DNA from: Aplysia californica
Lineage: Eukaryota
Length of the DNA: 58,334 nt
NCBI RefSeq assembly: GCF_000002075.1
Contig: NW_004797951.1
Span: 280,852-339,185, forward strand
Reading direction: 5' to 3'
Of this stretch, positions 21,774 through 57,627 are shown one piece after another. The notes beneath the pieces were generated by a model. The model saw nothing but the letters and a program-made list of their open reading frames with translations, did no database searches and was not told the DNA's origin. Numbering within the stretch: the stretch's first letter is position 1; each line of letters starts with the position of its first letter. The position numbers were made by a program, and so were the translations under genes.

Positions 21774-24700
21774 TCTCTCTCTCTTTCCTTCTTTTCTCTG
21801 TTTGCCTCCTCAATCAACCTCACTCATTTTCTGTTCACACTCATTCAAAGATGCTGATGTGTACACACACAAAAGCCTGTTACTTAATGCCCCAACCCAA
21901 ATGACAAAACTGGCCAAATGTAACCATTATTAATATGACAATTTGGCATAGACCACTTCTCAAAAGTAACAGAATCAAAAAGTTACTTTGACGCAACAAT
22001 AGAGATTACTGAATAAAAAATGTGGTCTTTAGATTTTACCTTTAATTAGTGGGTTTTTTTATCTTCAGTTGTTTATCAAGGTAGGCCTTGTTAAGCTCTG
22101 TGTAGCTTCTTATTTAAGTCCTTTTGGTTTGTATCTTTTAGCAAACTTTCACTACCCCCCGGGGCAGTGCCACTGACTGTAGTGTCTTTAGGCCATTCCC
22201 AAAGGGGTCGACATTTCTCGTTCAAGCACTGTAGAATTGTAAATGGGCTGATTCATCATTTCACACTCATAACTATGCCTGATCTGCAACAGGGAGCTGC
22301 TGCTTTTTCTTTCCTAATCCTTACTATTGTCATTTCCTCTACTTCTTTTGTATGTTTACCACACTCTTGTGACCCGCTATTTCCGGGGTGCCCTGATAGT
22401 CGAAGCAGACTTTGTGCTGTTGAAGCTAGAGAGGTAAGCAGAGTAAGTCTGATACCCTGTAAGGAATTCTCTGTTGACACCCACCCCTTGGCGCTCATAT
22501 AACCTTGTGCTGTTGCGAGCGCCGTAAAACCCTCTGCTAAAAAAAAAAAAAAAAACTTTCTCAAGATTTGTTTTCTTACGACTTTTCAATCTGTCCTTCT
22601 CCTCAGCCCCTGGGTTGTGTGGCATCGTGGGAGGAAGACCGAGCATGTAAGTATTTTTTTTCTCCTTCTCCTCGTTCTTTTTCTTTCATTTTCGGCTTTC
22701 ACTCTGTTCCCTCCTGCTTTCTTTTCCCTCTTCTTCTTGATCGTATTCGTCTCTCGCAATGAGCTCTCTCTGATTGCCTGTCCACAGTGTCTCCCTCACA
22801 CTCCATCTCAAACTGCAGGCTACCATTCTCTTGCTCACTGTATGCATACACATATCACTTCAAAATTTTCAGAGTGGGGGGGTCGGCTGTTTTTGAATCA
22901 ATAAAGTTGTCTTATTTTTTTAAATTCAAAAGTATGTCTGGCCTTATTTAAAGTAAAAAACATTGTTCATTTTCCTCTCCCAGATCCCCAGTACTGAGGC
23001 TGTTTTCCTTCCTGTACCCAAGGGACAATTTCAAGGTATCTGTGTCGTGTCTGAAGATAACGTAGAATTTGTTTTTAATCAGTTATTCATCCTATTTAGT
23101 CTATCAATTGTTTCTCAGAACTGGAAAGAAAACAAAATTTGTTCTTTCATTCCGCCATCTGAATTTCTACCATAGACTTGTTTCAGCCAAGTATGGGTTG
23201 TATACATTGTTACTTTTCCTGAGAGAGGCAAAGAAATTTCTTTCAGAACTGGCTGCTTCATTGAAGTTACGGGTGACATTTTTGTATAATGCGTTTAAAA
23301 AATATATATATTTGTCATTACACAGTGGAGTCACACGCTCTTCAATTTTTGGGCATGTGGAGTTATTGATATCATCTGAAGGCTTATTCATTTTTGCTTG
23401 CTTCAATGAAAAAAATTTCCTCCTATCTTGAATAGAAGTCAGTATGTTTGTGATTGAAGTAGGTGAGGTTGCCCATTTTCAGTGGTAAAATTACTGTAGC
23501 GAGAAAATGGCTGCCAAAGTTTGGTAACTTCAATAGCTTGAGAGTCGTTGAAAATGTATATTTTATGCCTTTACTTTAACTTTTTTCAGGAAGATTAACG
23601 TGGAGATGTGCATCACGGTGCCTCACATATACTCATAACAAGTAAATGAAAAACGAGAAATCAGTTCTGAGACCCGTATTAACCCTATCCGTATGTCGTG
23701 TTTTGCTATCGTATTCATACGACGCTGGGAACTCTGTGCCACCACTTTCCAAAGAGGAAATTTACTCGTTAATCCAATCTGTACGCTTTGCATAGCTGTC
23801 TGTCAAAATGATTTTTTGAGAAATACTGAAAGTTTCCAAGACATCTTCGCACTAGAAGTATTCTAAAATGTGAAGAATACTCCAACCCCGGGGGGTACAA
23901 AATTACCCCAGGGCGTACAGATTGGGTTAACTAACAACCGAGTGTTGGTTTTCGACAGATCACGATCGAGATGAACGACGAGGTGGTGGAGTACCAGCAG
24001 CCCGAGGTCCCGACCGTCGAGTACACGCGCCAGGCGTACCCGGCCAGCGACAGCAACGGCAACGGCCCGAACCCGCTGGTCAACGACATTGACCTTCCCG
24101 GGGGTGACAGGAGCTACAGGCTGGAGGAACTGGCCTATACCCGCTCGGGGGACAAAGGGGACACCTGCAATATAGGTTAGTTTAGTTTTAGTAGAGGTTT
24201 TTACGGCGCTCACAACTGCATAAGGTCATATGAGCGCCAAGGGGTGGATGTCCAAGGGGTGGATGTCAACAGAGATGTCCTTACAGGGAATCAGACTTAT
24301 TATGCTCACCTCTCTAGCCTCAACAGCACAAAGTCTGCTTCGACTATCCAGGCACCCTGGAAATAGCGGGTCATAAGAGTGTGACAAACATACAAAAAAA
24401 GTAGAGGAAGTGACGATAGTAAGGATTAGGAAAGAAAAAGAGGCAGTTCCCTGTTATAGTTCAGGCACAGTTATGAGCATGACATTGTTGGATCAGCCCA
24501 TTTGCAATTCTACTGTGCACTAGAGCAAGAAATGTCCCCCCTTTGGGAATAGCCTAAAGACACTTCAGTCTGTGGCACCGCCCCGGGGGGGGGGGGGGGG
24601 GTTATATATATATACAAATGTAGAATTAGATATAGAGTGAGATGTAGGTAAATATGAAGAGAGACACAGAGAGAGAGAGACTCACAGAGTGAGAGAAAAA

Positions 24701-25893
24701 AAAATTATTTTGTACCTAGAGGGGAGATCTTTTGCTGCACCTGCTTGGGGGACACCTGCGCTATTGGTTAATTATATATGTGTTTATCGATGTAGGTATA
24801 GATATAGAGTGCTGATATGGATAGATGGTGAGAGAGGGAGGGAGAGTGAGAGAGACAGAGAGAGAAAGAATTATATTATACAGGCTGGAGGATCTGGCCT
24901 ACTTCCGCTCAGGGGACAAATGGTACACCTGCAATATTGGTTAGTTATATATATATATATTGATGTAGATGTAGATATAGAGTGCTGATACAGATAGATA
25001 TATGGATAGATGGTGAGAGAGAGAGAGAGAGAGAAAAATAATTATAATATACAGAAAGGGAGAGATCTTTTGCTGCACGTACTTGGGGGACAAAGGGGAC
25101 ACCTGCAATATTGGTGAGATATATATATATGTATATGTGTCCCAACCTGGAGATATATATATATGTACATGTGTCACAACGTGGAGATATATATATATAT
25201 ATGTATATGTGTTACAACGTGGAGATATATATATGTGTATATGTGTCACAACGTGGAGATATATATATGTGTATATGTGTCACAACGTGGAGATATATAT
25301 ATGTGTATATGTGTCACAACGTGGAGATATATATATATATGTATATGTGTCACAACGTGGAGATATATATATATATGTATATGTGTCACAACGTGAAGAT
25401 ATATATATATGTATATGTGTCACAACGTGGAGATATATATATATGTATATGTGTCACAACGTGGTGGAATCAGGTTCTCATCAATTTTTGGGCATATGGA
25501 GTTATTGGTATCATCTTAAAAAGCCTGTCCATCTACCTTGCTTTCAATGAAAAAAATATCCATTTATCTTGGATGCAAGTCAAGATATTGGTGACTGAAG
25601 GAGGTGGGTGTTGCCTGGTTTCAGAGGTCAAATTAGCGAGAAATGGCCGCTAAAGTTTAGTTATTCCCTAAGATTGAGAGTCCGTGAAAACCTAAAATTG
25701 ACATTTTTATGCAATTAATCGTTTTCCAATAAAATTCACACAGAAATGTGTTCTTTAATGAGCATGAAAGGTGTTGAGCAAAAAAACAAAAATTTCACTT
25801 TTCTTTTGTTTCATTATTTTGACGAGCGCCTGATTTCACCACGCTGCCTCACATATAGATGTAGAAAATGAAATAGATGAATAGATAAATGGT

Positions 25894-25935
<42 letters not shown>

Positions 25936-28284
25936 ATTACATGTCTATTATTTAGAGAGGGGAGGTCTTTTGCTACACCCGCTGGATGGACAAAGGGGAC
26001 ACCTGCTATTGGTGAGATATATAGGTGTAGTTATAGATATACACTGGGTGCTGATGTAGATAGATTTATAGAAGATAGATATGTCATATAGAGAGATATA
26101 CAGATAGATGTACATACGTTTTTATACAGATGTTTATGATTGTGTGGATCATTGAATATAATATGTGTGAATGTTTATGATTGTGTGGATCATTGAATAT
26201 AATATGTGTGAATGTTTTTGATTGTGTGGATCATTGAATATTATAATATGTGTGAAAGTTTTTGATTGTGTGGGTCATTGAATATAATATGTGTGAATAT
26301 TTTTGATAGCATTTATGTTTTATGTGAGTGTGTTTGATAGTGTTAAGAATATGTGTGCATCTGGACAGCTGACCCTTGGGGCAGGTTTCTCTGCCTTTAT
26401 ATGAATAGGCCTGTATGTGTGTTTATATGTAAATCTGTATTTGGGTGCAAATGTGTGAGGTAATTTATGTCTGTGAGTGAGGATGTAAATGTGTTGGTGA
26501 GTGAATGTTTTATATATGTTATGAATGTTATGGAGAGGTATGTGTGTGTATGTGCGTGCGTGCATGCGTGCTTGCGCGTGTGTGAATGTTACTGCCAGTT
26601 TCCCTCTTTCTTCCCCATTTATTTGCACAAACTGTCCTATCCGTTGGTGGTTGGTGGGTGCTCTGGTGTGGTTTGCTTCTTCTTTCCTATCAAACATCTA
26701 TCGTCCTTATCTCCCCTCCTTCTTTTTTGTATTTGTTACTCTCTTGTAACACTTTTAATCTTCTGGCACTCATATGACCTTATGCAGTTGCGAGCGCCTT
26801 AAAACCTCTACCAAAACGATATTGTCTTCTCCTCGTCGCAGGTGTGGTAGCCCGCCACCCGGTGTTCTTGCCATTCATCCGCAAGCAGCTCACGGCAGAG
26901 GCAGTCGAGAAGTATTTCGAAGACAATTTTAGAGGGAGCCCTGCCAATGTCACCAACAAAGTTCAAAGGTAAACGGTTGTTGTCGGCGAGTGATATAGAG
27001 GTTGTAGTGTTGTTGTTGTTGGTGGTGTGAGGGGTGTATTTCCATCTGTGTGTTTGTTGGTGTGTATGTGGGTGTGACAAGATAATTGCTTTCCTTTTGT
27101 CATATTTTCCAATTCGAAGCCCATGTATGAGCAGAATAAGCAAGTAAAACAATTCAAGTCCTTATAATGACGGGGTTTCAATTCCATGACACATAATTTT
27201 GAGAAAATGAGATTCGAAGATTCACACTCTTATATATAGTTTAAAATGTTATTACACTTGTTTGTTAAGGCAAAAACAGCACCTGGATATGGATTGCTGG
27301 TGCCTCTATAAATAAATTATTGATGGTCGACTTATTTGTTTAGTGTCAAACTGAAAGAAAAAGGTCAGATTGTCTAGGGATTTTGACACAGCATGCTGAT
27401 CATCTGTGTCCGTAATGTGTAACGTCTAACTCGGTTCTCGAAAAAAGTGGAGCTAGAACCCTGTCATTCTAAGGACGTATGTGAATCATACACTCTTTAC
27501 AGTTTCACAGTGTTTCATATATGCCCACCTTTAAAGACCAGAAGAGTATTATTCATTTATTTAATCATTTAAGATAAGATAGGTAAGATAAATCTTTATT
27601 GTTCAGATCCTGGTACATTATACATTTGTGTATAAAAAAAAGTTTGTGTTATATGTATATATGTGTGCGGGTGTGCTTTTGTCAGTCAGGTGTAGACACC
27701 ACTTTATTTATGCTTCAATATATGTGACTGTGTTGGATGTTTGAACACATTTCCAGGTATGATGTGCCTGGGGTTGGCGGTCTCAACTTTGTCCTGAAAC
27801 ACTCGCTGGGCGGAGGCGGCATCGCTTCACTGCGCACAGATCCACAGGTGAGGTGGTGCTTTCTCTGTAAAAAGCCACATACAAGCTTGCACACGCAAGC
27901 ACACACTCAGACACACACTCACACACACACATGTAAGCACACACATACAAACAAAAAACGGGGATTTTAAAAATCCGTCATTACCGGATCCCTGTTATTA
28001 CCGGGCCTGTTATACATGGTTTCCTCTGTATTTTGTGGATCTGAAGTTAAAGTCCATAAGCAAGTATTCCTTCTTCCTTTGGTGAGTCTAATAGATGTGG
28101 TAAATGTGAAGCTGTCTGCGTAACTATCACTTCCATTTTATTTGTAATCACTGATGTGTTTGTAATTTACTCTTTCTTTATGTCTCTGCAGGGCAAAGGA
28201 ATGGGTCAGGAATTGCTCAACTTCAAAATCACGAATGTTCCGGACTTGAAGAGACTGGCGGAGGAAGCGGTCACTCAGAGTTAA
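8677..28284 (+). CDS. Acyclic terpene utilisation AtuA family protein (DUF1446 plus C-terminal AtuA domain), 663 aa, probably mitochondrial
   Basis: 18 exons: 8677-8863, 11715-11815, 12528-12597, 13045-13175, 13635-13723, 16582-16681, 17077-17120, 18203-18280, 18938-19190, 19930-20036, 20598-20706, 21137-21239, 22607-22646, 22984-23035, 23959-24175, 26842-26968, 27757-27847, 28192-28284. Total 1992 nt, all GT-AG and in frame. Motifs [111 protein letters not shown]. Confidence 0.93.
9357..9976. mobile_element. MITE with long imperfect TIRs, unclassified, TATA flanks, internal (CA)n
   Basis: Left ggtagcgtcaattgcc...aattgactttttgtcaattgccac is the reverse complement of right gtggcaattgacaaaaagtcaatt...ggcaattgacactacc. 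Confidence 0.8.
11138..11478. other. Assembly gap (others: 21311-21476, 21634-21733, 35114-35356, 50332-50471, 52226-52557)
   Basis: N runs, mostly next to microsatellites; the gene models stay in phase across them. Confidence 1.
12102..12330 (+). mobile_element. tRNA-derived SINE
   Basis: A box tggcctagtgg, anticodon-like loop ctcgtaa, B box ggttcg; core gttgtgtccttgggaaagg; TSD-like gga[c/g]atatcag on both sides. Confidence 0.8.
13767..14171 (-). mobile_element. Non-tRNA SINE-like retroposon, family A (about 380 bp)
   Basis: Homologous to the 19524, 22155 and 24181 copies; A-rich tail; TSD tgtgaactgt (13757-13766 / 14172-14181). Confidence 0.9.
15458..15522 (+). mobile_element. Tail-only retroposon (stem-loop plus A-run)
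   Basis: ttggcgctcatatgaccttatgcagttgagagcgccgtaaaaccct; TSD acactctac (15449-15457 / 15523-15531). Confidence 0.85.
16255..16420 (+). mobile_element. Degenerate family B copy
   Basis: gagtgctctcgtgtgggttgctccattcttcttatcaaacaactatcgtccttatctc; decayed tail. Confidence 0.7.
17545..17752 (+). mobile_element. 5'-truncated RTE-type LINE 3' end with (gat)n tail
   Basis: Homologous to 51680-52012; TSD aatggttaata. Confidence 0.8.
19524..19916 (+). mobile_element. SINE-like retroposon, family A
   Basis: Starts ccccccggggcagtgccactg, ends ggcgctc...gagcgcc..aaaaccctctact plus A-rich tail; TSD aattatt. Confidence 0.9.
20843..21022 (+). mobile_element. SINE-like retroposon, family B (about 170 bp; same tail as family A)
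   Basis: Body gtgctctggtgtggtttgct..ttctttcctatcaaacatctatcgtccttatct plus stem-loop tail plus A-run; TSD ct[a/g]attagtg. Confidence 0.85.
22155..22552 (+). mobile_element. SINE-like retroposon, family A
   Basis: Same 5' end and stem-loop tail, poly(A); TSD aaactttc. Confidence 0.9.
23683..23926. mobile_element. piggyBac-like MITE
   Basis: TTAA|ccctatccgta ... tacagattggg|TTAA; second copy at 49353-49592. Confidence 0.85.
24181..24600 (-). mobile_element. SINE-like retroposon, family A
   Basis: Reverse-complement copy inserted about 5 nt after the exon 15 donor. Confidence 0.9.
25113..25463 (+). repeat. Minisatellite, about 32-38 bp unit, about 10 copies
   Basis: gtggagatatata(ta)n-tgtatatgtgtcacaac repeated. 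Confidence 0.95.
25447..25858. mobile_element. TA-flanked MITE with TIR atatgtg...cgtggtg.aatcagg
   Basis: Left atatgtgtcacaacgtggtggaatcagg versus right cctgatttcaccacgctgcctcacatat; related copies at about 23320-23630, 49880-49960 and 53067-53335. Confidence 0.75.
26128..26306 (+). repeat. Minisatellite, about 41 bp unit, about 4 copies
   Basis: tgattgtgtggatcattgaatataatatgtgtgaatgttt. Confidence 0.95.
26640..26818 (+). mobile_element. SINE-like retroposon, family B
   Basis: Same body and tail; ends about 25 nt before the exon 16 acceptor. Confidence 0.85.
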
Positions 28285-37391: not shown

Positions 37392-40300
37392 ATGGCACTG
37401 CGAATGGAGCCAGGTCAAGTGTACAACTCGTGGCTGGAATTCAAGCAAGCCCTTGAGGAGCACTGCAATGAGCACAAAGTCTTGTTTAACATTGGTCACG
37501 CCAAAACTGTGGAACAGGCAAACTCTCTTTTGAAGAAACCCCCGTTCTTTCACGACCGTCTGAAGTATGCATCATGCACACTGCGATGTAAACACTTCGG
37601 ATCCTACACAAGTCTCAGTGCTGGGTTGAGACCAAAGCAAAGGTTTGTCCCTCGCCCAATTTCTTAGATTTTAAGATCCTGTTATATATTATTTTGTTTT
37701 TCAGGGGGAAAAGTTGATAGAACAGATGTTCTCACATTTATTTTTTACCCTTTTTTCACCAGGAAAGAATTAGAGAAACCTGTTACTGTAACGTCACATG
37801 ATTTCATTACGTCTCTGATGTGATGTCAATGTGTTGAAATTTGACCGTTTTTATGTTTGTCGCCTGTGAAATATCCCTAATTATTGGCATAGAACCTTAT
37901 CTTAGTTTCCTTTTGCAGTTACTTGTCGTCCACATGAATAAATCTCAGAAGTGGCAATTGCCATAGCCTTAAGACAGCTTTAATTTATGAACAGAATGTT
38001 GAAATTTAATTGATTGAGGTAGCCTAGCTTCGTTTTTGTCAGAGTTTGAACTAAAGATACAGTGTGCTTCTAATGAAGGCACATCTCCACTGTGTCTGTA
38101 ACTGTTACAACTGTACAGAATTTATTTGTCTTACTTAGATTTTGTAAAAATATGTAACCATGATATGACTGGTCATTCCCTTACTTCTTGGCTTTTCATG
38201 TTGCCTAATCATACTACATGTACTTGTATTTGGCATGACAAATTTACAGGCTATTGATTCTAGTGCTTTCTCGTTGTTAGGTCGTTTTTATTTTTATCTT
38301 TTCCCGCCCTACATTGCGTCTTCTAAATGTGAACATATTTTTCTTTTCTTATTGAATGTTTAAAATTGATACCCTCACGATTTCCGGTTTGTGACTTCCG
38401 GTTTTTCCAGTGGATTTCTCATTATAGTGAATATTTGCATACATTGTATGCATTCACAGTAGAGAGATCCACAGAAAACACACACACAACAGTTACAGAT
38501 TTTAAATAGCAAAATATAAGAAGCCTAGTGAGATGCATTTTAAAAGAATATGTCATCCTATTTATGGAATGTTTGAGTCATCAATCCTCTTCTTTTTCTC
38601 CTCTATTGTTTTAGGAGCTACAAGATTGACTGCAAGGCTTTTGTCAGTGTCAGCGCGTGCCGCAAGGAGGGCTACTTGATTGTCCGTGACTCTTGTCATC
38701 TGCACTCACACCCATGCACCGAAGAAATCTACAACTCGTACCCGGAGGTGCGAAGGATGAGCAAAGACGAGAAGAAGATGGTGGGTACTCTAATGGAGAT
38801 GGGCGTTCCTGTGGCACAGATCAAGACTGCAATTGGAAGAAGTGTGACACCGAAGGACTTGCACAACGCTCGCTCGCACATGAAGCGAGTCCGGATGGGA
38901 CTGGACAGGGAAGAACCTAGGACGGGGCCCCGTAAGCGCCGGACGTACTCGGAGATGCAAGGGGACCATCAGGTGGTCGGTGAGATTCTCTCGGGTGGGG
39001 AGGAGGTAGAAGAGGACATGGAGGGAATTTCTTCTACTCCCGAGAAAAAGGTCAAGACGGAGAGTGAACAGGAAGAGAAGGGAACGGAGGAGGTGACCGA
39101 ATCGGCAGGTTTTTCCATGATGGTGGAGGGGATGGGCGACCAGTTGGGGGCTACAGACAATGGTTTGAGCGTGGTTGAGTCGTCTCAGGCGGGCTCCGAG
39201 AGAGAGGTGACCTCTAGCGTGGAGGATACTAGTGGACTATCCGGCCTCCTGGCAGCGGCGGGGCTCAGCTCAGACTCGGTGGTGCTCACCGTCAATCAGG
39301 GGTCAAAGTCTGAGGTGTCGGAGGAAACAGAAAAAAGAGAGAACCAGCCCAAGAACTCGTACACGGTCACTATCTCTCTACCCGAGGGGGACGTTACGCA
39401 CACAGGGACTGACTTACAAGAGCTGCTGAAAGGTCTTCCGCTAAATAAAATCGGGCCGACCGCCAAAGCAGATTCCTCTTCCCCTCTCCCAGCTGAGGTG
39501 AAGACAGAAGTGCCGAGAGGAGCAGACAGCGCGGGTAAAAGCTGCTCAAAGTGCGAGTCGTACATGTCGCCTCTGGATGGGCACAGCCTGTGTCTACAGT
39601 GTCTGGGGCCGGACCACCTGCTCATGAAGGAGTGCGTCCACTGCGCATCCATGAGACCCGAGCAGCTGTCCATTCGCAGAAAGCAGCTGGTACGACAGCG
39701 CATGAAAGCCCTGAAGGCTCTGCAGGACAAGAGGATGCGCCAGTCTTTGCTACAGTCGGACTCGGACGACAGCAGTGTGGCACCTATCATCTTGAGGAAA
39801 AGTAAGAGGGGTCGGAAGCCCAAGAACTATGGGCCGGATATCGCCGTGGAAAGTGCGTTTGTGAGGGGGTATACGTCTGCCAGAGACAAAGAGGGTGACA
39901 GAGTTCGCCCCAAAAGTGAGCCGTTCGATGAGTATGAATTGAACCCCTTTGAGCAGCAAGACAATGTAGCTGATTATGCTGAGGAGAATAAGTCCAGGTC
40001 TGCGTCATCTAACAGTCAGCGGTTTGATCACTTGCTGGGACAGACGGCTGTGCTCGACGACGTCATTTTGGAGGAAAGTGGTCAGGGCTCTCTGCTCTAT
40101 GTGCCAGGTCCAAGCGCTTGTGACGAATTTGCCAGAGTGACAGCGCTCCAGAACCCCCCAGCTACCCTAACCTCTCTCTACGGCAAGTACTCTCTTCACC
40201 AAAGCTTTGAGTCGGAGTACTGCAGTGATCCGCCTGCCCTCAGCAATGTGTCTGATCCGGGGGTCAAAGCCATGGGCTCTGGTTTGCGCAAGCTGGCGAA

Positions 40301-41120
40301 GAATGCAGCTGTCCAGACCAGGCTGGCTGTGTATGACCAAGTCTTCACACGTCTAGGGGTGGGTATGGCAGATGAAGCCCTGTCTATTCTCGGCGAGCTC
40401 TACGGTAAAGTCACTCACGTGACCGAGATCTCTCAGGAAGACCTGACCAACGACCTTCAAACAGCTCTTGATACCATACAAGCACTCAAAGACGTGTTGG
40501 AGGAACTTGGCATCATGTCCTCCGACGCCATCAGCACTGCAGCCCACCAACGAAGTCTGTCGATCGGCTCTCTCAACATAGCAAAGAAGTCACTCCAGCA
40601 ACAAGCAGATGCTTCAGAAGTCTCAAACCGCCGGCGGAAGTTCCAACCGTTCTCGCGTCCCAAAATAGCCCCAGTGATCATAAAAACACCCGAGCCCGCG
40701 CCAACTCCCCCACCACCCGTGCAGTCTTCATCCTCGTCCTCATCTTGCGCGACGAGCTCCCTGCCTGCCCTGTCCATCCCGAGCCAATACATGAAGCACC
40801 TGGTGGTCAACGTCTCTGCCGACAACGACCTTGCCCTCATCCCGTCCTCCACCGCCCAGGAAGTGACGTCCGAGCCCCAGCCAGACCCGAGCCCGGCGTT
40901 CATCAGCGTGTCCAGCAAGGAGTACTCGGTGGCGCCGCTGACGGTCAGCTCGGAGCTCCTACAGAGCCTGCAGGGCGGCAAAGAGGGCGTGATTGAGCTG
41001 CACGTCATGAAGGAGGATGCCGCGGGGATGCTCACGGCAGGAGACACCATTGAGGAGGTGATACACACGCAGTCCGAGGAGGTCCTCGATGCCTCCGGGG
41101 CATACCAGCTCAACAGTTGA
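37392..41120 (+). CDS. Chimeric transposon-derived putative nuclear protein, 918 aa: FAR1/ZSWIM3-N (Mutator) DNA-binding domain + DIRS Gag-type zinc finger + LAP2alpha-like helical domain
   Basis: Exons 37392-37642 (aactATGg start, AG|gtttgt donor) and 38615-41120 (ttttag acceptor) join in frame (phase 2) to give 2757 nt with no stops or frameshifts. The N-terminus has C-x23-C-x23-H-x-H followed by a MULE-type helical segment (..TPKDLHN). Confidence 0.85.
39543..39690 (+). other. DIRS1-like Gag/ORF1 N-terminal zinc finger within the chimeric gene
   Basis: CSKCESYMSPLDGHSLCLQCLGPDHLLMKECVHCASMRPEQLSIRR fits the recalled DIRS ORF1 pattern CxxC-x7-D[GP]HxxCxxCLGxxH-x5/9-CxxCxxM...L..R. Confidence 0.75.
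40140..40660 (+). other. LAP2alpha-like / DIRS Gag helical domain within the chimeric gene
   Basis: Amphipathic helices ...DPGVKAMGSGLRKLAKNAAVQTRLA...DAISTAAHQRSL followed by the basic RRRKFQPF; order and spacing after the zinc finger and low-complexity linker match DIRS ORF1. Pattern recognition only. Confidence 0.5.
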
Positions 41121-41324
41121 TGAGAGGTCACCCTTTAGTTTATCGAGGAGGTGATACATACGCAGTCCGAAGAAGTCCTAGATGCCTCCAAGGCCAGCCA
41201 GCTCAACAGTTGAGGAGACGTCACCCCTTAGTTTATCGAGGAGGTGATACACACGCAGTCCGAGGAAGTCCTCGAAGCCTCCGGCCATACCAGCTCAACA
41301 GTTGATGAGACGTCACCCTTTAGT
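41052..41324 (+). repeat. 93-bp tandem triplication spanning the stop codon of the chimeric gene
   Basis: Units start at 41052, 41145 and 41238 (gaggaggtgataca...cagctcaacagttga...caccc.ttagt). Confidence 0.95.
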
Positions 41325-42129
41325 CCTTTGAAGATGTGATAATCACACCACAGTACATGAAGGAGACTTTTGAGACAATGTCATGCCACACCAGCTCATT
41401 AGTCAATGCTTCGTCACCCGGCCCCTTGTATTTTGGAGAGGTGAATCAAAATAATCTAGTCTACCACGGATGCCCTTGGTGTAACCAGGGGGTGACCACT
41501 CAAAAGTTGATACAATATCTCCTTATATTCTTTTGACCCGTTCTTCAGTGAAGTGGTTAGACTTTTTTGCCCTGCATTCACTAGACATGAGTTTGTTTCC
41601 AAGATGGTTTATTGTAAGAATATTTCATTGAATGATTGATTGAAGTTCTCTGCTGGTCAGCTGCCAAGATTATTGAGATGTACCCCACATAGTCTGGTTA
41701 GCTTGGACAGGTGGAACTGAAGTAGCCTGTCTCGTAAATGATCTTATCTGTTTCAATGGGATCTCAGAACAGTTTCTCTCTTTTGACCTAGTAGGCCCTA
41801 CTAGTACTAGTACAGTTGAGGTTAAGGACCAGAGTCTTCCTTTTCCTCAGTGAATTGACTGCCAAGTATACAAGTGTCTCTTATACTTATTTAACTTATA
41901 CTGCTTAAATCTAATCAAACTTTTTGGCATTTTCAAAAAGGCATGAACCGGTACCATATATATGCTGCTATTCATTTCATGTTGCAATATTTTGTTACAT
42001 TCATGGAAGAGTGTTACATAAATTAAAAACTCAAGTAGACATATTCAACACTGTTTGTCTTCATTTTTCTCTCCAATGATAAGATCATCTTTGGCCTTTC
42101 TTTCTTTTTGTGCTGCTTGAATCCCTCTC

Positions 42130-47311: not shown

Positions 47312-47990
47312 TCTCTCTTGCCCTTTTTAACTCCCAGTGGAGCATAGGCCATCAACAACATTTCTCCAGTGAAGCCTGTCCTAAGCATCCTTTTCTAGCT
47401 GCTTCCATGATGTCCCCGCCTCTTCCATTTCCGCTTGTACAGCTCGCCTCCATGTCATCTTTGGCCTTCCTTTCTTACGCTTTCTTTGTGGATTCCACGT
47501 CAAAGCGTGTCTGATGATGCTTGTCGGGGGTCTCTTCAGGGTATGTCCAATCCATTTCCATTTCTTCACTTGTATGTCTTCCTTTACTGGCCTTTGACTT
47601 GTTCTCTCTCACAGTTGAGCATTAGTGACTCGATCGTACGACTTGATCCCAACTATCCTTCTTAGACATCCATTTATGAAGCTCTGCAGTTTCCCTGCTG
47701 CTGATGCTGTGAGCCTCCATGTCTCTGAACCATACAGTAGAACAGTCTTCACTTTTGTTTTGAAGAACCTCAGCTTAGTGTTCAATCCCAGTTCCTTAGC
47801 CATCCATACATTCCTGAGGATGATGAATGCTGTTCTTTCCTTTTGGATTCTGACCTTGATGTCTTCGTCTGTTCCCCCTGCCTTGTTGATGACACTTCCC
47901 AGGTAGGCGAAGGATTCAACATCCGCCAATGGTGTCCCTTGCAGTGTGATAGGAACGTCGGTTGCATTCATTCGAAGAACTTTTGTTTTA
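47312..47990 (-). mobile_element. RTE-clade LINE fragment (post-RT region, frameshifted)
   Basis: VESFAYLGSVI...DEDIKVRIQK...KTVLLYGSETW, then KWKWIGHTLKRP...ALTWNPQRKRKKGRPKMTWRR. Confidence 0.9.
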
Positions 47991-48719
47991 TCCAAGACCC
48001 AGATACTCAATAAAAATTCTCCCCATATGGGAATCGACCTCACATCTGCTGCATGTGATGGCAAAGTGCCTAATCACTACATTACACGCGCCAGTTGTGT
48101 CAAAAGGGAAGGGACGAAATAAAGAAATACAGACCCCCAAGACATAATTCTATGGAATCATTATAGCAGGTATATTTCATCAATGCAAACAATGTCTAAT
48201 TTGACATTTTAACAGAAATCATAAAAGAAATACACAAAAACACATGTCGTGTAGGGCCTGGGCTCATTTATGACACAGAAGAAGATTAAACTACTGCTGT
48301 GTCAAAGCTAAAGGCTACTGAACCTTTCCCAACACACCATGTAGGTCTACTACTAAAATAGACCAACAATTTGTCAGAAAATGTAAGCAATCTTTGGCCT
48401 GTTTAAGACTTTTCCTTCCTGATGACTTCATGAATTCAAAACATTTTCTGTTCTCACAATGAAAAAAATTTGGCTCACTTAAATTCAAATTCAAGCTTGG
48501 TTTTTGTCTCATAAGTTAAAAAATATTTTTAAAATACTTATTCTAAGTAGATCTACACAGGCTGTCGACAGGTCATTTGAGGTTGATGATCAGAGCTCAG
48601 CTTATGAAACTTTTGATAAATTTTTGGCCAAGTTTTGCTGGACAGGTTCTCAGCTTTCTGCTGTTTACATTACAATCCGACACGTAGGAGTGGGAAAGAT
48701 AATGTCCATCAGCCGCATA

Positions 48720-49196: not shown

Positions 49197-52100
49197 TCAG
49201 GACAAAGGGTCTCCGCCCTCCTCAACATACAGCTGCATCTGTGGAGAAAGCGGACACCGAGAGTTGGTGGCTTTTTTATGTTAAGACCTTCCCCTCCCCT
49301 CCCCACCGCCAATTACTTTTATTCTTTAGAACATCAATAAATAATCCTTTGACTCTGTTCGTACATCATGTTTTACTATGGTATCCATATGACGTGGGGA
49401 ACTCTGGGCCAGCACTTTCCACAGAGGAAATTTACTCGTTAATCCGATCCGTACACTTTGCACAGCAGTCTGTCAAGATGATTTTTTGAGAAATACTGAA
49501 AGTTTCAAAGAGATCTTTGAAAAAGAAATATTCTAAAATGTGAAAAATACAACTCAGGGGGTACAAAATGACCACAGGGCGTACGGATAGGGTTAATGTT
49601 TAGACCCTCACCTCCCCACCACCGGTTACTTTATTCTTTAGAGCATCAATAGATAATACTTTAAAAAATAACCCCCAAAAATACAACGATAAATTTTATA
49701 TAGATATAAGAGTGGGTGGGAGTGTAAAGGAGACCTATTTTGATTAGAATTTGATATTATGTTATAGACCTTTATTATATGTACTTCACAACCTTGAGGG
49801 ACAAGATTAAAATGATAGGCCCAACAACAGAAGTAAATCTAAAACTTATAACAAATTACTATTAGCATTAGACACGTTCTTCTCTCTCATCTTCATAGAC
49901 AATAACTCCATGTGCTCAAAAATTGATGACCGCCTGAATCCACATCGTTGCGACTCATACTCGTATGAACTTCTCTCAGTCTGATACTTAAGTGGTATGA
50001 GAATGTACTGGAGAAAAAGTTTGTAACAAAGAGCACACAAAAAAAAAAGGAAAAAAAAAAGAGAGTTTCCATTAAATCAATACAACTGGACACATGAGAA
50101 GACATAGAGAAATTCGGCTTGGAGGTGAACTTACATCAAATATATCCGTGGACACACTTTTCACCGGAATTATTTTAGCATTGGGAATTTTTTGTTGTTG
50201 CTCATCCGCTTCTGTCCAAGGGAAATCCTGTGAGAAGAGAAAAATAAAACGCTACACACCCATTCATTCCTTATTACACACACACATGGTAGGCCCGTCC
50301 GCACAAACCCTCACACATACATTCGCGCGCANNNNNNNNNNNNNNNNNNNNNNNNNNNNNNNNNNNNNNNNNNNNNNNNNNNNNNNNNNNNNNNNNNNNN
50401 NNNNNNNNNNNNNNNNNNNNNNNNNNNNNNNNNNNNNNNNNNNNNNNNNNNNNNNNNNNNNNNNNNNNNNNAGAGTGCAAAATTTGAACAAACAGCAAAT
50501 ACATCCACTAAATTTAAACGCAATATAACCAGCCATACACACAGATAAAATTGAAATATATATAAATACAGTAAAACCCAAAACTTCATGGGACAAGAAA
50601 ACGTAGTCATTCCATGCACATTTTACAGAAGGCAAAGTGCCAATGAAAAGAATAAAAAAGGGGAGGCTACTCCTTTCTTACTATTACAAGTGAACCTCTC
50701 TCTCTCTCTCTCTCTACTCTCTCTCTCTCTTCTGGCGCAGAGGCGTCATAAATGGTCAGCGATGCCGACAGCACAAAGGAACTCAACACTCGCCCGCGGG
50801 TCCTTAAAAAGTGTTGAAAATGGGTAACTGAAATGTCCCAGCAGACACAAATGAACCTGTTTTGATAGTTCTTTATATCTAATGAAAGAGCTCCAGATAA
50901 AAGAGACATGTTTTTGGTAACCCCCGAAAACTAATTTGATGCCAAACTCGTCGTAAAGGAATGTTACTGAGTGGCTGCCAGTGGCTCACGCCTGACAGCA
51001 TCTTGGAGTGACTTGCCGGAGATAAGGAGTTAAAGAACAACGTCTGCAACTACCAACCAGTGGCCATTATTTAACATTATGAACACTTTAATTTTCACCA
51101 ACCCACCATTTGGATCAGCTTCTCCTCAGCAGACGATAACGTGGAATCTTTTGTGTGGGCATGGATGGTCCATGTAGTAGCTGAAACAATATATATGAAA
51201 AATAAGTGAAGTCATTTGGGCAAATATCTTAAAATGAGAACATACATGTTGTTTGTTTGTTTTAGTAGAGGTTTTACGGCGCTCGCAACTGCATTAGGTA
51301 ATAGAACATACAAGTTGTTTAGTTTTAGCAAGTGTTTTACGGCACTTGCAACACAACAAGGTCATATAAGTGCCGAAGATTAGAGGTGTTACAAGAGAGT
51401 AACAAACACAAAAAAAGAAGGAGGAGAGATAAGGACGATAGATGTTCGATAGGAAAGAAGAAGCAAACCACACCAGAGCACCCTCCAACCACCCACAAAC
51501 ATACATGTTGAAATCTGGGATAGAATGTTATATCAACAAGAACAAACAGTATGAGAAGTTGGCAAAACTTGTAACAATAATGATATACACATTCTAAGTA
51601 ATCTAAGAGGTTGGCTAAACTCAGGGAAAAAAATCTTGTTCCAAAGATAACACATAAAGATTTGATAATACTATCATCATCATCATCATCATCCAGTGCC
51701 AGATCTGCAACAGACATTGGCGATCATGATTTTCCATTCATTCCTTTGCTCGGATGCTCTCAGAAAAGCTACGTTTCCCTGATTTTTCCCTGTTACCCAT
51801 TTGTTTAGGTTCCCTAAGTATGTTGTTCTGAGCCTACCCCTGCCTCGCTTGCCTTCAATTTTGCCAGTGAGAGCTAGATGTTCAAGACCCTTATGTCTAT
51901 TCAGGTGTCCCAAAAACTGCATTTGTCGTTTCCTGATTGTTTTTAACATTGAGCGTCCCACGTGGGCTTCATCAAGCACTACTTCATTTGATTTCTTTTC
52001 CTTCCACGATAAGATAATACTATCATCACTATAAAAACTATTTCAAGAGTAACATGTGGTAATTTAAAATGTTCTAGATGTTCAGCACTTCAGACAGCCA

Positions 52101-55100
52101 TAAATCCATCAGAATCTCACACATGTACCCCGTAAACACACATGTGTACATACTAGATTGGGAAAGTATTCGGTTTCAATGTTATGTGTCTTGAAATATT
52201 TTTCATTATAGTTGTTCTGTTCCTANNNNNNNNNNNNNNNNNNNNNNNNNNNNNNNNNNNNNNNNNNNNNNNNNNNNNNNNNNNNNNNNNNNNNNNNNNN
52301 NNNNNNNNNNNNNNNNNNNNNNNNNNNNNNNNNNNNNNNNNNNNNNNNNNNNNNNNNNNNNNNNNNNNNNNNNNNNNNNNNNNNNNNNNNNNNNNNNNNN
52401 NNNNNNNNNNNNNNNNNNNNNNNNNNNNNNNNNNNNNNNNNNNNNNNNNNNNNNNNNNNNNNNNNNNNNNNNNNNNNNNNNNNNNNNNNNNNNNNNNNNN
52501 NNNNNNNNNNNNNNNNNNNNNNNNNNNNNNNNNNNNNNNNNNNNNNNNNNNNNNNNNTAAGAAGAAAGGATTTTGAAAAATGGGTATTCCGATGTAAAGC
52601 GCATTGAGCTACTTTTTTGGAAATGCGCTAAATAAATGTTATATATTATTATTATTATTATCTCAACATAAAGAGTAGTCTACCCGTTTTGAAATATTTT
52701 TAGCATCTTTGAAAACCTTGTTTGACAGATTGAAGACAGGGATACAATTTGACTTTCCAAAACGATGCAAGCCCAAGACATTCTTTACTATACAAAAAAA
52801 AAAGATACCCTCAGTGGAAAAATAAAACTTAAGAAAGAAAATTTTAATTTACTGTACTTTGTTGAGTTTAATCATTCATTAAATACAGTTTTTACATAAT
52901 TATAAAACAATCAAATTCCTAGTTATGTAAAAAAAAAATCTTCTCACATACAACTTTATTACAACAACTGGACAAAAACCGTTGTTTAATGAATTGTGAC
53001 AGAAGCTTAATATTTGAAACATGAGCACAGCAATCTCTTCGACATAACAAATTATGAAAAAAAAAACATGTGAGGCATCCAGTTGAAATCAGGCGCACGT
53101 CAAAATAATGAAAACGAAAAATTTACATGTGGATCTTACAGAAAAGCGTTCATTTAAGGCACAAATAACATTTCTGAAACCAGGCGACCCATACCTCCTT
53201 CAATTGCAAATATCTTAACTTTTTTTCATGATTGATGTGTATTCTTTTAAAATCGCAAGCAAGGCAAATGAACAAGTTAAAATGACACCAATAATTTACG
53301 AGTGCCTGAATCCTCCGCGTCGCGAGACTCATATCAATACCCACCTGTAAGTTGTGGTAGCCATCTCCAGTTGGGGCTATGGCAACACATAATGAGTGAC
53401 TTGCTAAAATGACCTTCTAAGAGTGGAGAAACCTATTTGGTTTAACTTATTTACTCCTATGTATTTATTTATATATATATATGTAAAACAATTTCCTGTG
53501 TGTTTACTCTAAGACTAACAGCTAATTTCAAAACCCAAAATGCTGCACAGTTGGTTGTTATTACCAAACACAAAAGTGCCAGATGACACAATTGGCCAGG
53601 GTACCAAAAAAACAAAAAAATTTTAAAAATAAAAACCAAACCCACCTGTAGAGGACGTCATCAGCAAGCCATCGCTGACGTTCAGTTTCAAGAGGAAGCC
53701 ACGTAGCGCCTGCTCTACTCGGAATAGATGCGGGTCAGTCCTGGTGTGAGGAGACAGCAGAGTAGTAGTACAAATGACCAAGTCAGACGAACTATCTAAA
53801 TAAATTGTACACTTTCTTCGAAAAGAAACGAAGAACACAGGGGGGAAAACAACCACAATCACAAACGGAAAATCGTGGGGGTATCATCTTTGAATGCTTG
53901 TTGACTCATAATTGTATTTCTGTTCAACTGATGGTGGATTATTGTTTTTTGATTTCTCATTTAACAAACATAACACAATAAACCACCAGTTATATAAATA
54001 TGAAGTTATGAGTCCACAGGCTTTTAAAATTGGCACCCTCACAATTTCTAATTTGTGACTATGGCAGTTTTCCCCCTGTGGTGTTCAATCATCTTCACCT
54101 CATCTAGTTTGTTTCCAGGGAAATAACTTTCTTTCATTCTCCCATTTTTTCCTTCCAGGGAGACAACTTTCTTTCCTTTCCCCCATGTGATGCTTCTCTA
54201 CTCGACTCAGACAGACATCTCTCTGTTGGATAGGTGGCAGGTGCCCTTGTATGGGTAACTCTCTCTTTCCCATTAAACATTTATATAATCTTCAGCACAA
54301 ATATGACCTTTTTGTGTTGCAAGTGCCTTAAAATTAAAACTCTTACTTTAAATCAAAATTCAGACATCTCTACCCATTCTTGTGCTGTACAATACCCCAG
54401 GCTAACGAGAGCTTAAGTAGGCCTATGGGTAAAAAAAAATTAATATTGACATTGCTTCCCCCCCCCCCTCTCCACACATGCAAGTCAAGGCTGGGCATGT
54501 TTCGCATGGGAAGATTAAAAAACCAAGAACTCTGTGTGTAGACTGCATCCCTGAAATTTCTAAGAAACCTCAGTATCGTAATATAACAGCCCCTCCCCCC
54601 CCCCCCTCCCCTTTCTCTGTTTTTTTCCCCTAGGACATAGATAAATATATTTCTAAAAGATAATAAGGATTGAACAAAACTTTCTCAAGATTGTAGGTTT
54701 TAATTTACTACTTGGTCTTAAAAATATTTCTGAAGAACCACATTACCCCATAAGTAACAGGTTAAAGTGTGTGTGTCAGACCATGAAACAACAATTTCTT
54801 AAAAAATATCTGTCTGTACAGCCTCAGACATATATATACACCAAAGGCTGAACAAATATTCATTTGACTTACTCTCTCCACTTTTCTTTCAAATCGCTCA
54901 CTTCAAAGACAAATTTTTCCACAGGTAAGCCAGTGTCTTCCTGAAGAATCACCACAGCAACTTTCTCGACTTTTCCCTCAGCGAGAAGTAGTTTCAGGCT
55001 CTGGATGATGTGGCCCACGTACGCACAAACATCTGGATGCAAACACATCTAGGAAAAGAAAATGAAGCCATTAAGATTTCAATCCCTTCAAACGAGATTC

Positions 55101-55264
55101 ATGGCTCACCAGCTAGAAGTGCAACTCCACTGTAGTCGAAAATATATATATAGACAAACAAATGAGTTCATATATACTCAAGTGAACACACACATATTCA
55201 AACCTTTCAAACCTTGCAAAACAGTAAAACATCATATAGAATAGTCAAAAAATGAATATCTATG

Positions 55265-55313
<49 letters not shown>

Positions 55314-57627
55314 ATTGATTATTTACCATTAACAGTTATGATTTATGATGTTCTGTTCATATTTTCTTTCTTTTCCCTTTCACTTTTACTTTAAAATGGA
55401 CTGCTTAAATTTGGGCTACTTCATCCAAAAGCTACTGTCATATATAGAAAACAAAGTACTAGAAGCTGATTCATTACACCATACTGTCTTTCTTTGACCC
55501 TCCTCACAGAGGGATATGGTTTTAAAAGAACTAGTTACAAAGAAAAGAGGAAGAAATGAACTGACACAAGATGAAGCTCTCATCCATGATTTCCTGAGAA
55601 GAGTTGAAGTATAGACAGCTTCACTTTAAAGGAGATTGAAGTGCTAGCACACACAGATGCCTGTCAATAACATGTTACTCTGATCCATCAGTAGAGAAAC
55701 CTTAGAGTTCTGCTTAGTAGCCAAATTCTAGACTTGAAAACCAGGAAATGTGAGTGAGAGAAACAGGTTTTTAAACTCACTTGGACAGGAACATTATACT
55801 TGATCTTTTTCTCAAATACTCCTTGAGGATACAAATTCCGGTTGTAAAGGATGCAATGAATTGCAACTTCAAGGAATTCCACAATGATGTCCACATTCAG
55901 CTTTTCTGAAAATGCAAGATAAAACATTACGTGTATCTTAGAGACATAAATATGTTGATAATGATCAACACTGGGAGGAGGTCCAATATAACAGCAATAA
56001 TTATATAATATAGATATAAAACATAAAAACAGAACCGTACAATATACTTTCTTACTGTACAAACAGAAAATAAAAAAACAAAAGGAATTCATATAAAAGG
56101 AAACTGAAAGTTCAAATCTGAGTGGGGTCTACATTTTTCTTTGGCTTCCTGGATTATTGCCACTCTATGCTGTGATAAAACTATTTAACTCTTTATCTCC
56201 GGCAAGCCGCTCCCAGCGGCTCGTGGTCAGAACCACTGTGCTGGTGAGCCGCTGACAGCGGCTCGAGTGAATTCCTTTACTACAACTTTGACATCAAATT
56301 ACTTTTCGGCAATTACTGAAAACAAATCTAATAGATATGAAGAATTATCGAAGTAGGTTCACTTTTTAAAATTCAATGACCAGTTTAGAGGCATATATGT
56401 CAATTTTAGATTTTGTACCAAAACAGGGCCCCAGCATAGTGGGTTACCCCCAACCTCCCCGAGATACAGGGTTAAAGTGGAGTCCATGTATACCGAAATC
56501 TGCAGAACCGCCAGAACAGGTTTTCAGTTTACAGACAAAAATCAAACTGTCTCCTGAAAGACAAGGATATATATATTCTGCACTTTGATGTACTGTGGTC
56601 TCCACTTAAGATTTCAGTGCTCAGGACAGGAGCTAGGAAAAAGCAATGTGGTCTGACAACTTAATGCTTACATTATGGGCGAGTGCAAAAGACTAGAGAG
56701 GTTAGCCAGTGGGGAACCAGTGAACTCATCATGCACAAGGTGAAGTCGACACAGCTGAAAAACATGTGGCGAGATCTCCGAAACAAAAGTATCCAATAAT
56801 AGCGAACTCGTCACACTACCTCCATCAATCAACTTATACCATTTTAAATTTGTTTTATGGCATAGGCTACAGTAAGGGCATGCACATTTTAAAGAGGTTT
56901 TATATATTGCACCCAAAAATGTGTCTGTTTTCTCTTTAAAAAGTTGAAACAGAAAGGCTGACATGTGGAGATTTTGATTGAATATAACTCTAGTTTTATA
57001 TTCTAAAAATAGTAATCTTAATCAAAGGTTGACATATATATATATGTGGGTTTTCCTGCCAATCCACGGTGAACTCGCCACACGTTTTTCACAAGTTGGA
57101 GTATGTGACGAGATAATTTTGACGAGATCACTGGAGGCATGTGACGTCTTTACCGTGAGACGAGTTCACTGGAAGTTGAGTGGAAGCCAACCTGTTAGAC
57201 CAACTATCACAGGTCTGTTCTTCTGATCAGGCATGCCATTTACAATAATCCATATGCGAGTCTCAAGATTTAAGTCAAAATTAAGTTGATCCCTTTTCTC
57301 CTCCCCTTCGCCGGCCCCCTCCCTACTCTTTATAATCTTCAGTCTACACATTCCGGATTCTTGGTTCCCACAGAGCACGCATACAGGGGAAAAGATTAAA
57401 AGTACTAGCGTACATACAGGTAGGCTACTGAAAACTGTTTACTGAAAAGCAGTAAAAGTAAAACTGTGAAAGAGTCAGGGGTAGACAGCAAGACGATAGA
57501 CCGATGCCGACAGTCGACAGTGCGAACAAGGAGGAGTGTTGGAGTTTGAAGAATGACCAGAGCCAGCAGAGCAACAACACCACTGTCAGTCGATGTCAGT
57601 AACAATACCTTCAGAATGTCCACTCAT
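49197..57627 (-). CDS. MAD2L2: Mitotic arrest deficient 2-like 2 / REV7 (HORMA domain), 207 aa
   Basis: Exons 57627-57609, 55905-55781 ([37 protein letters not shown]), 55048-54873 (MCLHPDV..Y...PVEKFVFE), 53740-53646 ([16 protein letters not shown]), 51180-51107, 50227-50135 (DFPW..AD...IIPVKS) and 49238-49197 (MQLYVEE...stop). 624 nt with consistent phases; the 19-nt first exon is the least certain. Confidence 0.95.
49353..49592. mobile_element. piggyBac-like MITE (same family as 23683)
   Basis: Collinear homology (gaggaaatttactcgttaatcc...gatttttgagaaatactgaaagttt); right end ggcgtacggataggg|TTAA. Confidence 0.85.
51252..51497 (-). mobile_element. Family B copy plus an adjacent tail-only insertion
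   Basis: Two tails in tandem; target aacataca[t/a]gttg present three times (51239, 51305, 51498). Confidence 0.85.
51680..52012 (-). mobile_element. 5'-truncated RTE-type LINE 3' end
   Basis: Translates [35 protein letters not shown]; (gat)n tail; 16-bp TSD gataatactatcatca (51664 / 52013). Confidence 0.88.
54225..54335 (+). mobile_element. Degenerate, internally deleted family B copy
   Basis: ggtggcaggtgcccttgtatgggt...cacaaatatgacctt..gtgttgcaagtgccttaaaa. Confidence 0.55.
56189..56471. mobile_element. piggyBac-like MITE, followed by a small TTAA-flanked inverted-repeat element (56476-56606)
   Basis: TTAA|ctctttatctccgg ... cccgagatacaggg|TTAA; internal inverted repeat gccgctcccagcggctc / gagccgctgacagcggc. 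Confidence 0.7.

Follow-up and report, generated by a model that had tools for sequence, protein, structure and literature searches.

A lineage-restricted gastropod gene combining a ZSWIM1/3-type DNA-binding head with a zinc finger homologous to that of tyrosine-recombinase retrotransposon ORF1

Introduction

Has a host gene been built from parts of both a class II and a class I transposable element? The question is raised by a predicted 918-residue protein gene on the + strand (37392-41120) of a 58,334-nucleotide stretch of Aplysia californica DNA (RefSeq assembly GCF_000002075.1, contig NW_004797951.1, positions 280,852 to 339,185), all of which was analysed and which we call the window. An earlier reading based on the letters of the window and their open reading frames (ORFs), here the sequence-only reading, proposed a double domestication in which the DNA-binding domain of a Mutator transposase had been fused to the Gag (ORF1) of a DIRS retrotransposon, including a helical domain of the kind co-opted in LAP2alpha. 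Our comparisons point to a narrower answer, and we think it probable that heterobranch gastropods possess a lineage-restricted host gene in which a head of the ZSWIM1/3 and Mutator-like element (MULE) type, a zinc finger captured from a retrotransposon ORF1 and a family-specific helical hairpin together form a DNA-tethered regulator.

Gene structure and conservation

The coding sequence is spread over two exons, with 83 codons before and 834 after a codon split as AG|G. Coding exon 1 (37392-37642) opens with the ATG at 37392, holds 83 codons plus two bases and encodes the first half of the WRKY-GCM1 domain including C66. An intron of 972 nt (37643-38614) interrupts codon 84 after its second base, with a GT donor at 37643-37644 and an AG acceptor at 38613-38614, and coding exon 2 (38615-41120) is an open frame of 834 codons plus the stop, TGA at 41118-41120. 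The splice model is supported by sequence comparison, with the Lymnaea and Elysia loci showing an identical two-exon layout and the annotated full-length orthologue proteins running continuously over the junction. For the searches described below, the window exons were taken one by one, and the intron-split N-terminal domain was represented by orthologue proteins of full length.

Around the gene we found no terminal inverted repeats (TIRs) or inverted terminal repeats (ITRs) of substance, the flanks holding low-complexity inverted repeats only, and neither the large flanking ORFs nor the two antisense ORFs gave Pfam matches to reverse transcriptase (RT), RNase H, integrase or transposase. Exon 2 has no MULE or RNaseH-like Pfam match, and likewise none was seen in any orthologue scanned. 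The sequence-only reading had described an intact, spliced ORF of 918 residues with no TIRs or ITRs, transposase core, RT, RNase H or recombinase adjoining it, and the exons, GT/AG sites and orthologue structure on the one hand and the repeat and Pfam scans on the other agree with that description. The motifs it listed (C-x23-C-x23-H-x-H, TPKDLHN at residues 162-168, the finger and RRRKFQPF) are likewise all in their places.

Exon 2 matches ten gastropod proteins at 42-52% identity, whose sources include six other heterobranchs: Lymnaea stagnalis, Biomphalaria glabrata, Bulinus truncatus, Elysia marginata, E. chlorotica and Plakobranchus ocellatus. The architecture is the same in the Lymnaea, Biomphalaria, Bulinus, Elysia and Plakobranchus orthologues, and those that are full length share the N-terminus as well. 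Since an exhaustive profile search of 1.84 billion representative proteins returned only four orthologue clusters, the family is, on present data, confined to gastropods and chiefly to heterobranchs. Public records name these proteins automatically as "ZSWIM3 N-terminal domain-containing protein" or carry clearly unrelated names. P0011, the orthologue that diverges most (40-44% identity), lies on Logan SRR13555242 contig L024 (259-2754); there exon 2 likewise opens at SYKINCKA, preceded by a pyrimidine-rich tract, and the intron is therefore conserved in P0011 too.

Within the Aplysia genome (927,310,431 bases in 4332 contigs) the gene is single copy, as a profile spanning the zinc finger to the hairpin and both finger-only profiles match this locus alone. 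Its surroundings are conserved as well. Upstream lie the exons of an AtuA-domain gene (23971-28281, + strand), located by tblastn with the Lymnaea AtuA exons, and downstream, on the minus strand, those of a HORMA-domain gene (50118-55930), also located by tblastn; the Pfam labels of both neighbours were read in Lymnaea and Bulinus. The order AtuA - gene - HORMA, with the last on the opposite strand, is kept in the window, Lymnaea and Bulinus. Ratios of nonsynonymous to synonymous substitution rates (dN/dS) for exon 2, calculated by the Nei-Gojobori method, were 0.10-0.14 among three Elysia-group sequences and 0.08 for Lymnaea versus Bulinus, with deeper species pairs saturated at synonymous sites. 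Being single copy, syntenic and under purifying selection, this is a host gene and not a mobile element. The same had been claimed from the window alone, and copy number (one locus in the 927-Mb genome, with no TIR-flanked copies), the kept gene order and dN/dS of 0.08-0.14 now stand behind it.

The middle zinc finger

The middle of the protein holds an eight-ligand zinc finger of the form C-x2-C-x9-H-x2-C-x2-C-x4-H-x5-C-x2-C followed by a long basic helix (39537-39761, + strand; residues ~392-466), modelled by AlphaFold2 (AF2) with a predicted local distance difference test score (pLDDT) of 70-84. The finger itself, CSKC...SPLDGH..CLQCLGPDH..CVHC, begins at nucleotide 39543. Among the 1.84 billion proteins, the zinc-finger-to-hairpin profile found 23 non-orthologous matches with E-values (E) from 5.8e-9 to 9.6e-4, none of which extends beyond the finger and the first part of the next helix. 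In all of these except the repeat-rich P0017, the finger lies at the predicted protein start or no more than about 60 residues from it; the finger match P0013 has one relative only. Profile-profile alignment with hhalign between the gene family and four fish ORF1s gave 96% probability (E 2.8e-9) over 47 columns. An alignment of 20 sequences showed eight invariant or nearly invariant ligands, C-x2-C-x9-H-x2-C-x2-C-x4-H-x(5-12)-C-x2-C, and D, L, G and R at non-ligand positions are also held in common.

The DNA around the matching sequences was informative. In a lizard assembly, P0015 is followed by RVT_1 (6.8e-24), RT_RNaseH and Phage_int_SAM/Phage_integrase, which is the DIRS1-like order, and a weak PCIF1_WW match in the same context (E 0.009, below the cut-off) may mark the methyltransferase-like region of DIRS elements. 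Downstream of P0040, a cluster-mate of P0020, stand an RT/RNase H ORF and then an integrase ORF, and an RT fragment lies downstream of P0018. The end of P0033 was read by eye as the N-terminal SAM-like domain of a recombinase, with no flag from Pfam at E 0.1, and the second ORF of L007, mostly out of frame, ends in a recombinase and is weak context evidence. Two further matches, P0023 and P0035, weakly match Pfam LAP2alpha at 0.019 and 0.057. Wherever the surrounding DNA is readable, then, the finger protein is the ORF1 of a tyrosine-recombinase retrotransposon, and with the profile, hhalign and alignment results we therefore accept that this finger and the N-terminal one of DIRS/Ngaro-type tyrosine-recombinase retrotransposon ORF1 are homologous. 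The sequence-only reading had staked its case on a profile match of this kind between the finger and the N-terminal finger of DIRS ORF1, and such matches were found, at E 5.8e-9 to 9.6e-4 and 96% hhalign probability.

Because the host gene is lineage-restricted while the element finger is diverse and widespread, capture by the host is favoured, and the finger was probably taken from a tyrosine-recombinase element before the sampled heterobranch lineages split. Tyrosine-recombinase retroelements have been reported in Aplysia (PMC4157794), and the genome examined here holds intact ones, with at least 22 recombinase loci. An apparently intact example at G000:C126:1188770-1193048 (L046 471-4749, minus strand) ends in the recombinase, and the motifs and position of its middle ORFs suggest RT and RNase H. 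Searched with the combined finger profile, the genome returned this gene alone, and with the fish ORF1 profile it gave no match.

The N-terminal head

The zinc ligands of the C-x23-C-x23-H-x-H motif are C66, C90, H114 and H116, all invariant in the five full-length orthologues. These orthologues match Pfam ZSWIM3_N (1.1e-9), DUF5575_N (4.5e-9) and FAR1 (0.009), above the curated cut-off. Exon 1 of the window alone scores DUF5575_N 5e-5 and ZSWIM3_N 2.5e-4 (22-24 bits), just under the cut-off because the intron cuts the domain in two, and the orthologue N-domain profile matches the same exon at 9.7e-39. The second half of the WRKY-GCM1-type finger (38616-38717, + strand) carries the invariant ligands C90, H114, H116 and C118 and aligns by hhalign with a paralogue described below. 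It is followed by a nearly invariant three-helix segment resembling a helix-turn-helix (38742-38894, + strand), which contains TPKDLHN, is common to the paralogue and is modelled as three helices (pLDDT ~67-80) in the Lymnaea proxy. In that proxy model, whose pLDDT over the N-domain is 51, the order of elements is a helix, one short and four main strands and three helices, which is compatible with a four-stranded sheet. WRKY-GCM1 DNA-binding domains are carried by MULE transposases according to fold assignment (PMC1702500). The three Pfam models describe this domain in MULE transposases and in the genes domesticated from them. On these sequence matches the N-terminus is a ZSWIM3_N/FAR1-type WRKY-GCM1 DNA-binding domain plus a three-helix segment, binding itself being predicted, and the sequence-only reading's assignment of it to the domain type of MULE, FAR1 and ZSWIM3 agrees with the orthologue Pfam matches.

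The orthologue N-domain profile found 15 further loci in the Aplysia genome. One of them, at G000:C80:585898-591783 (L021 2898-8783), is an intact ZSWIM1/3-like gene whose large exon matches ZSWIM1-3_RNaseH-like (4.8e-7) and, more weakly, MULE (0.0026), and carries a SWIM-type CxC...CxH and an AT-hook. Alignment of the gene family to this paralogue (hhalign 89.9% probability, E 1.7e-6, 97 columns) is limited to the second finger half and the three-helix segment. The two genes have their intron at the same position and in the same phase, after the second base of the codon next to the conserved Q of G-x-R-x-x-Q, and the first exons at two other ZSWIM3_N-like loci stop at the same residue. The head therefore belongs to an intron-bearing ZSWIM1/3-like family. 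Based on these comparisons, it most likely arose by duplication inside that family rather than being acquired independently from an active Mutator element, and a fresh Mutator domestication appears doubtful. By the same comparisons, the transposase core and SWIM finger that went with the head are lost in this gene, and the head may descend from a gene family that was already domesticated.

Two further observations concern these loci. The G000:C80 paralogue has a possible additional 5' exon at L021 2898. The roughly 15 further ZSWIM3_N-like first-exon matches (L011-L020, L022, L023) include G000:C88:1563634-1563894, C319:793825-794085, C1325:31260-31520 and C558:6672-6980, and three of these have the same pair of in-frame stops and for that reason resemble copies of a single repeat or of a dead gene family.

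The C-terminal region

AF2 modelling from a 12-sequence alignment gave a mean pLDDT of 59.5, with structured parts at 70-86. The model shows the finger and a helix of 34 residues, a small element made of helix and strand, and a hairpin of two helices. The hairpin (40257-40613, + strand) is the best conserved block of the protein, an antiparallel coiled coil of two helices of about 55-60 residues each with pLDDT 75-86.

The sequence-only reading had taken this helical domain for the DIRS Gag domain retained in LAP2alpha, and here it did not hold. No hairpin relatives beyond the orthologues emerged from the exhaustive profile search. The helical part aligned to the fish ORF1 profile with an hhalign probability of 0.14%, and hmmsearch with filters off, run with the helical domain against every finger match, found nothing. 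Pfam LAP2alpha had no match in this gene, either in the orthologue scans or in a six-frame search of the genome, and the ORF1 of the resident G000:C126 retroelement showed no alignment to the gene. Against PDB sequences, the zinc-finger-to-hairpin profile gave chance-level matches only, and with the helical model Foldseek returned no PDB match at E <= 1e-3. A wide fold search with VIA-align gave Z 7-9 to dynein stalk, IpaB and SMC hairpins, values that are generic for long helices; LAP2alpha was not among the matches listed. Searches of the ESM Atlas by features or shape produced no usable match. By sequence and model, this domain at the C-terminus is a coiled-coil hairpin of generic type with no detectable link to DIRS ORF1 or LAP2alpha. 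Separately, a search of the Aplysia genome for LAP2alpha turned up a single match at a chance-level E of 0.14, and its ORF, read by eye, was unrelated to DIRS ORF1.

Several shorter conserved elements, all on the + strand, surround these domains. Before the finger, an acidic linker whose alignment between species is poor carries two motifs defined by invariant columns, GLSGLLAAAG..DSVVLTVN (39228-39299) and SYTVT.SLP.GDV...NLQELLKGLPL.K (39354-39455); their hydrophobic, beta-like cores beside acidic residues recall, as we take it, SUMO-interaction motifs. Between finger and hairpin, the invariant basic patch KSKR.RKPK..GPD (39795-39839) is probably a nuclear localisation signal. Following the hairpin are the conserved basic motif RR.KF.PF (40629-40652; RRRKFQPF in the window) and the conserved C-terminal motif FI..S.K.Y...P...ELL..L (40899-41015).

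Proposed role and alternative explanations

In the explanation that we favour, the head (residues 1-175) would have been inherited by duplication from an intron-bearing ZSWIM1/3-like gene, and the two-zinc, eight-ligand finger with its basic helix would have been taken into the host gene from a DIRS/Ngaro-type element. The head would anchor the protein at specific DNA sites in the manner of FAR1/FHY3 and other WRKY-GCM1 domains, and the finger and hairpin, together with the short conserved motifs, would recruit or assemble partner proteins or nucleic acid. With a head predicted to bind DNA and a finger and hairpin predicted to make contacts, we therefore propose that the protein works in transcription or chromatin regulation, as an adaptor tethered to DNA, and not in transposition. 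Of the double domestication first suggested, the MULE-family head and the ORF1 finger stand, while the helical Gag falls away and the shared intron makes a fresh Mutator capture doubtful.

Several points weigh against this explanation. The gene model is a prediction from genomic sequence, and DNA binding, partner contacts and the direction of transfer (element to host or host to element) are likewise inferred from sequence. The AF2 model of the N-domain in the Lymnaea proxy, at a pLDDT of 51, is too poor for a fold search, and prediction of a hairpin homodimer scored 0.01, which speaks neither for nor against a dimer. No molluscan element with this finger was found, and the one resident ORF1 examined, that of the G000:C126 element (444 codons), is without it.

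The last two points also lend some support to a reading without any retroelement domestication, in which the gene is a ZSWIM1/3 paralogue with novel sequence for its core and the finger is an older host module that retroelements captured, or was inherited independently by both. The intron position and phase common to the ZSWIM1/3-like paralogue are in keeping with this reading, and the region shared with the elements amounts to only about 60 residues. However, the finger sits near the protein start in every non-orthologous match except P0017 across 1.84 billion proteins, the contexts that can be read are those of element ORF1, no other host protein family surfaced, and the element finger is far more diverse than a lineage-restricted host gene. 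We therefore regard this alternative as unlikely.

A second alternative keeps more of the Gag than the favoured explanation does, and holds that everything from the finger to RRRKFQPF is one domesticated, LAP2alpha-like DIRS1-like ORF1, joined to a Mutator DNA-binding domain, whose helical part has diverged beyond detection. The finger is indeed homologous to ORF1 fingers, the entire region lies inside one large exon, and its order of finger, basic helix, poorly aligning acidic and basic stretch, long helices and basic tail resembles that of P0035 and P0023, which themselves weakly match LAP2alpha. This gross collinearity with element ORF1s is suggestive, but it is not evidence. Against it stand the 0.14% hhalign probability, the empty unfiltered hmmsearch, the lack of helical relatives beyond the orthologues, the Pfam LAP2alpha, PDB profile and fold searches that gave no LAP2alpha match, and the resident retroelement ORF1 that does not align, and we judge this reading quite improbable. 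Its functional extension, that the entire C-terminal two thirds is a domesticated ORF1 tethered to chromatin by the head, seems to us very unlikely. Such a protein would serve either as a LAP2alpha-like chromatin organiser of independent molluscan origin or as a decoy poisoning the assembly of tyrosine-recombinase retroelements. The decoy or restriction-factor role suggested by the sequence-only reading has no support: searches of the Aplysia genome brought up no ORF1 that could assemble with the protein by way of this finger or hairpin.

Finally, the gene might be taken for a chimeric mobile element that is or recently was active, or for unrelated ORFs joined by faulty annotation, since both recognisable domains are of transposon type and the gene model is drawn from genomic DNA. 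The single copy, the conserved synteny, dN/dS of about 0.1, the lack of terminal repeats and of a catalytic domain, and a two-exon structure and junction that recur in distant species all argue against this explanation, which is extremely improbable.

Flanking features

Three tandem 93-nt copies (41049-41327, + strand) extend across the stop codon into the beginning of the 3' flank, the later copies being 86% and 60% identical to the first. The first copy contains the gene's final 23 codons and its stop, and a species-specific C-terminal extension after EEVIHTQ appears to fall inside the repeat unit. Between the gene and its HORMA neighbour, on the minus strand at 47609-48064, is an ORF of 151 codons with a strong Pfam DUF6451 match (5.8e-13).

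Comparison with known systems

The head places this gene beside the domesticated MULE transposases of the ZSWIM1/ZSWIM3 type and FAR1/FHY3, with which it shares the C/C/H/H WRKY-GCM1-type finger and the three-helix segment, and beside the ZSWIM1/3-like gene of its own genome in the position and phase of the intron. Unlike the ZSWIM1/ZSWIM3 type, it has no RNaseH-like core or SWIM finger and is unrelated after residue ~175. Fusions of host genes with transposases, and genes assembled from parts of several elements, are known, SCAND3/ZBED9 among them, and the present gene is like such fusions in reusing a transposase DNA-binding domain joined to other modules in a host regulator.

With DIRS1-like and Ngaro-like ORF1 the gene has in common the eight-ligand finger and helix; identity is 25-41% over about 60 residues, among them the non-ligand D, L, G and R. 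It differs in that its finger is internal and not N-terminal, the remainder of ORF1 is not detectably shared, and no RT, RNase H, methyltransferase, recombinase or terminal repeats adjoin it. Gag zinc fingers are present in some tyrosine-recombinase retroelements (PMC4157794). The nearest precedent is mammalian, LAP2alpha (TMPO) and the ZNF451-L2a isoform having exons derived from a DIRS1-like ORF1 (PMC4495291). As in those proteins, part of a DIRS-type ORF1 would be fixed in a host nuclear protein within one large exon; the mammalian genes, however, keep the helical domain, whereas this one keeps the finger and its hairpin is without similarity to LAP2alpha.

The literature searched yielded no account of a MULE-type head combined with a tyrosine-recombinase ORF1 finger, nor of a DIRS-type ORF1 finger fixed in a mollusc gene; it held no paper on DUF5575, none combining ZSWIM1/ZSWIM3, MULE and domestication, and no study of the biochemistry of the ORF1 zinc finger. 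The reuse of transposase DNA-binding domains and the co-option of Gag pieces are already known, and what appears new in the light of these searches is their combination here. Transposase DNA-binding domains in host genes are a known source of new regulators, and this gene would add a DIRS ORF1 piece fixed outside vertebrates in a new architecture, with a class II head and a class I finger, strongly constrained in the heterobranch gastropods sampled. The gene also offers a conserved, host-encoded copy of the ORF1 zinc finger that could be studied in experimental molluscs such as Aplysia, Lymnaea and Biomphalaria.

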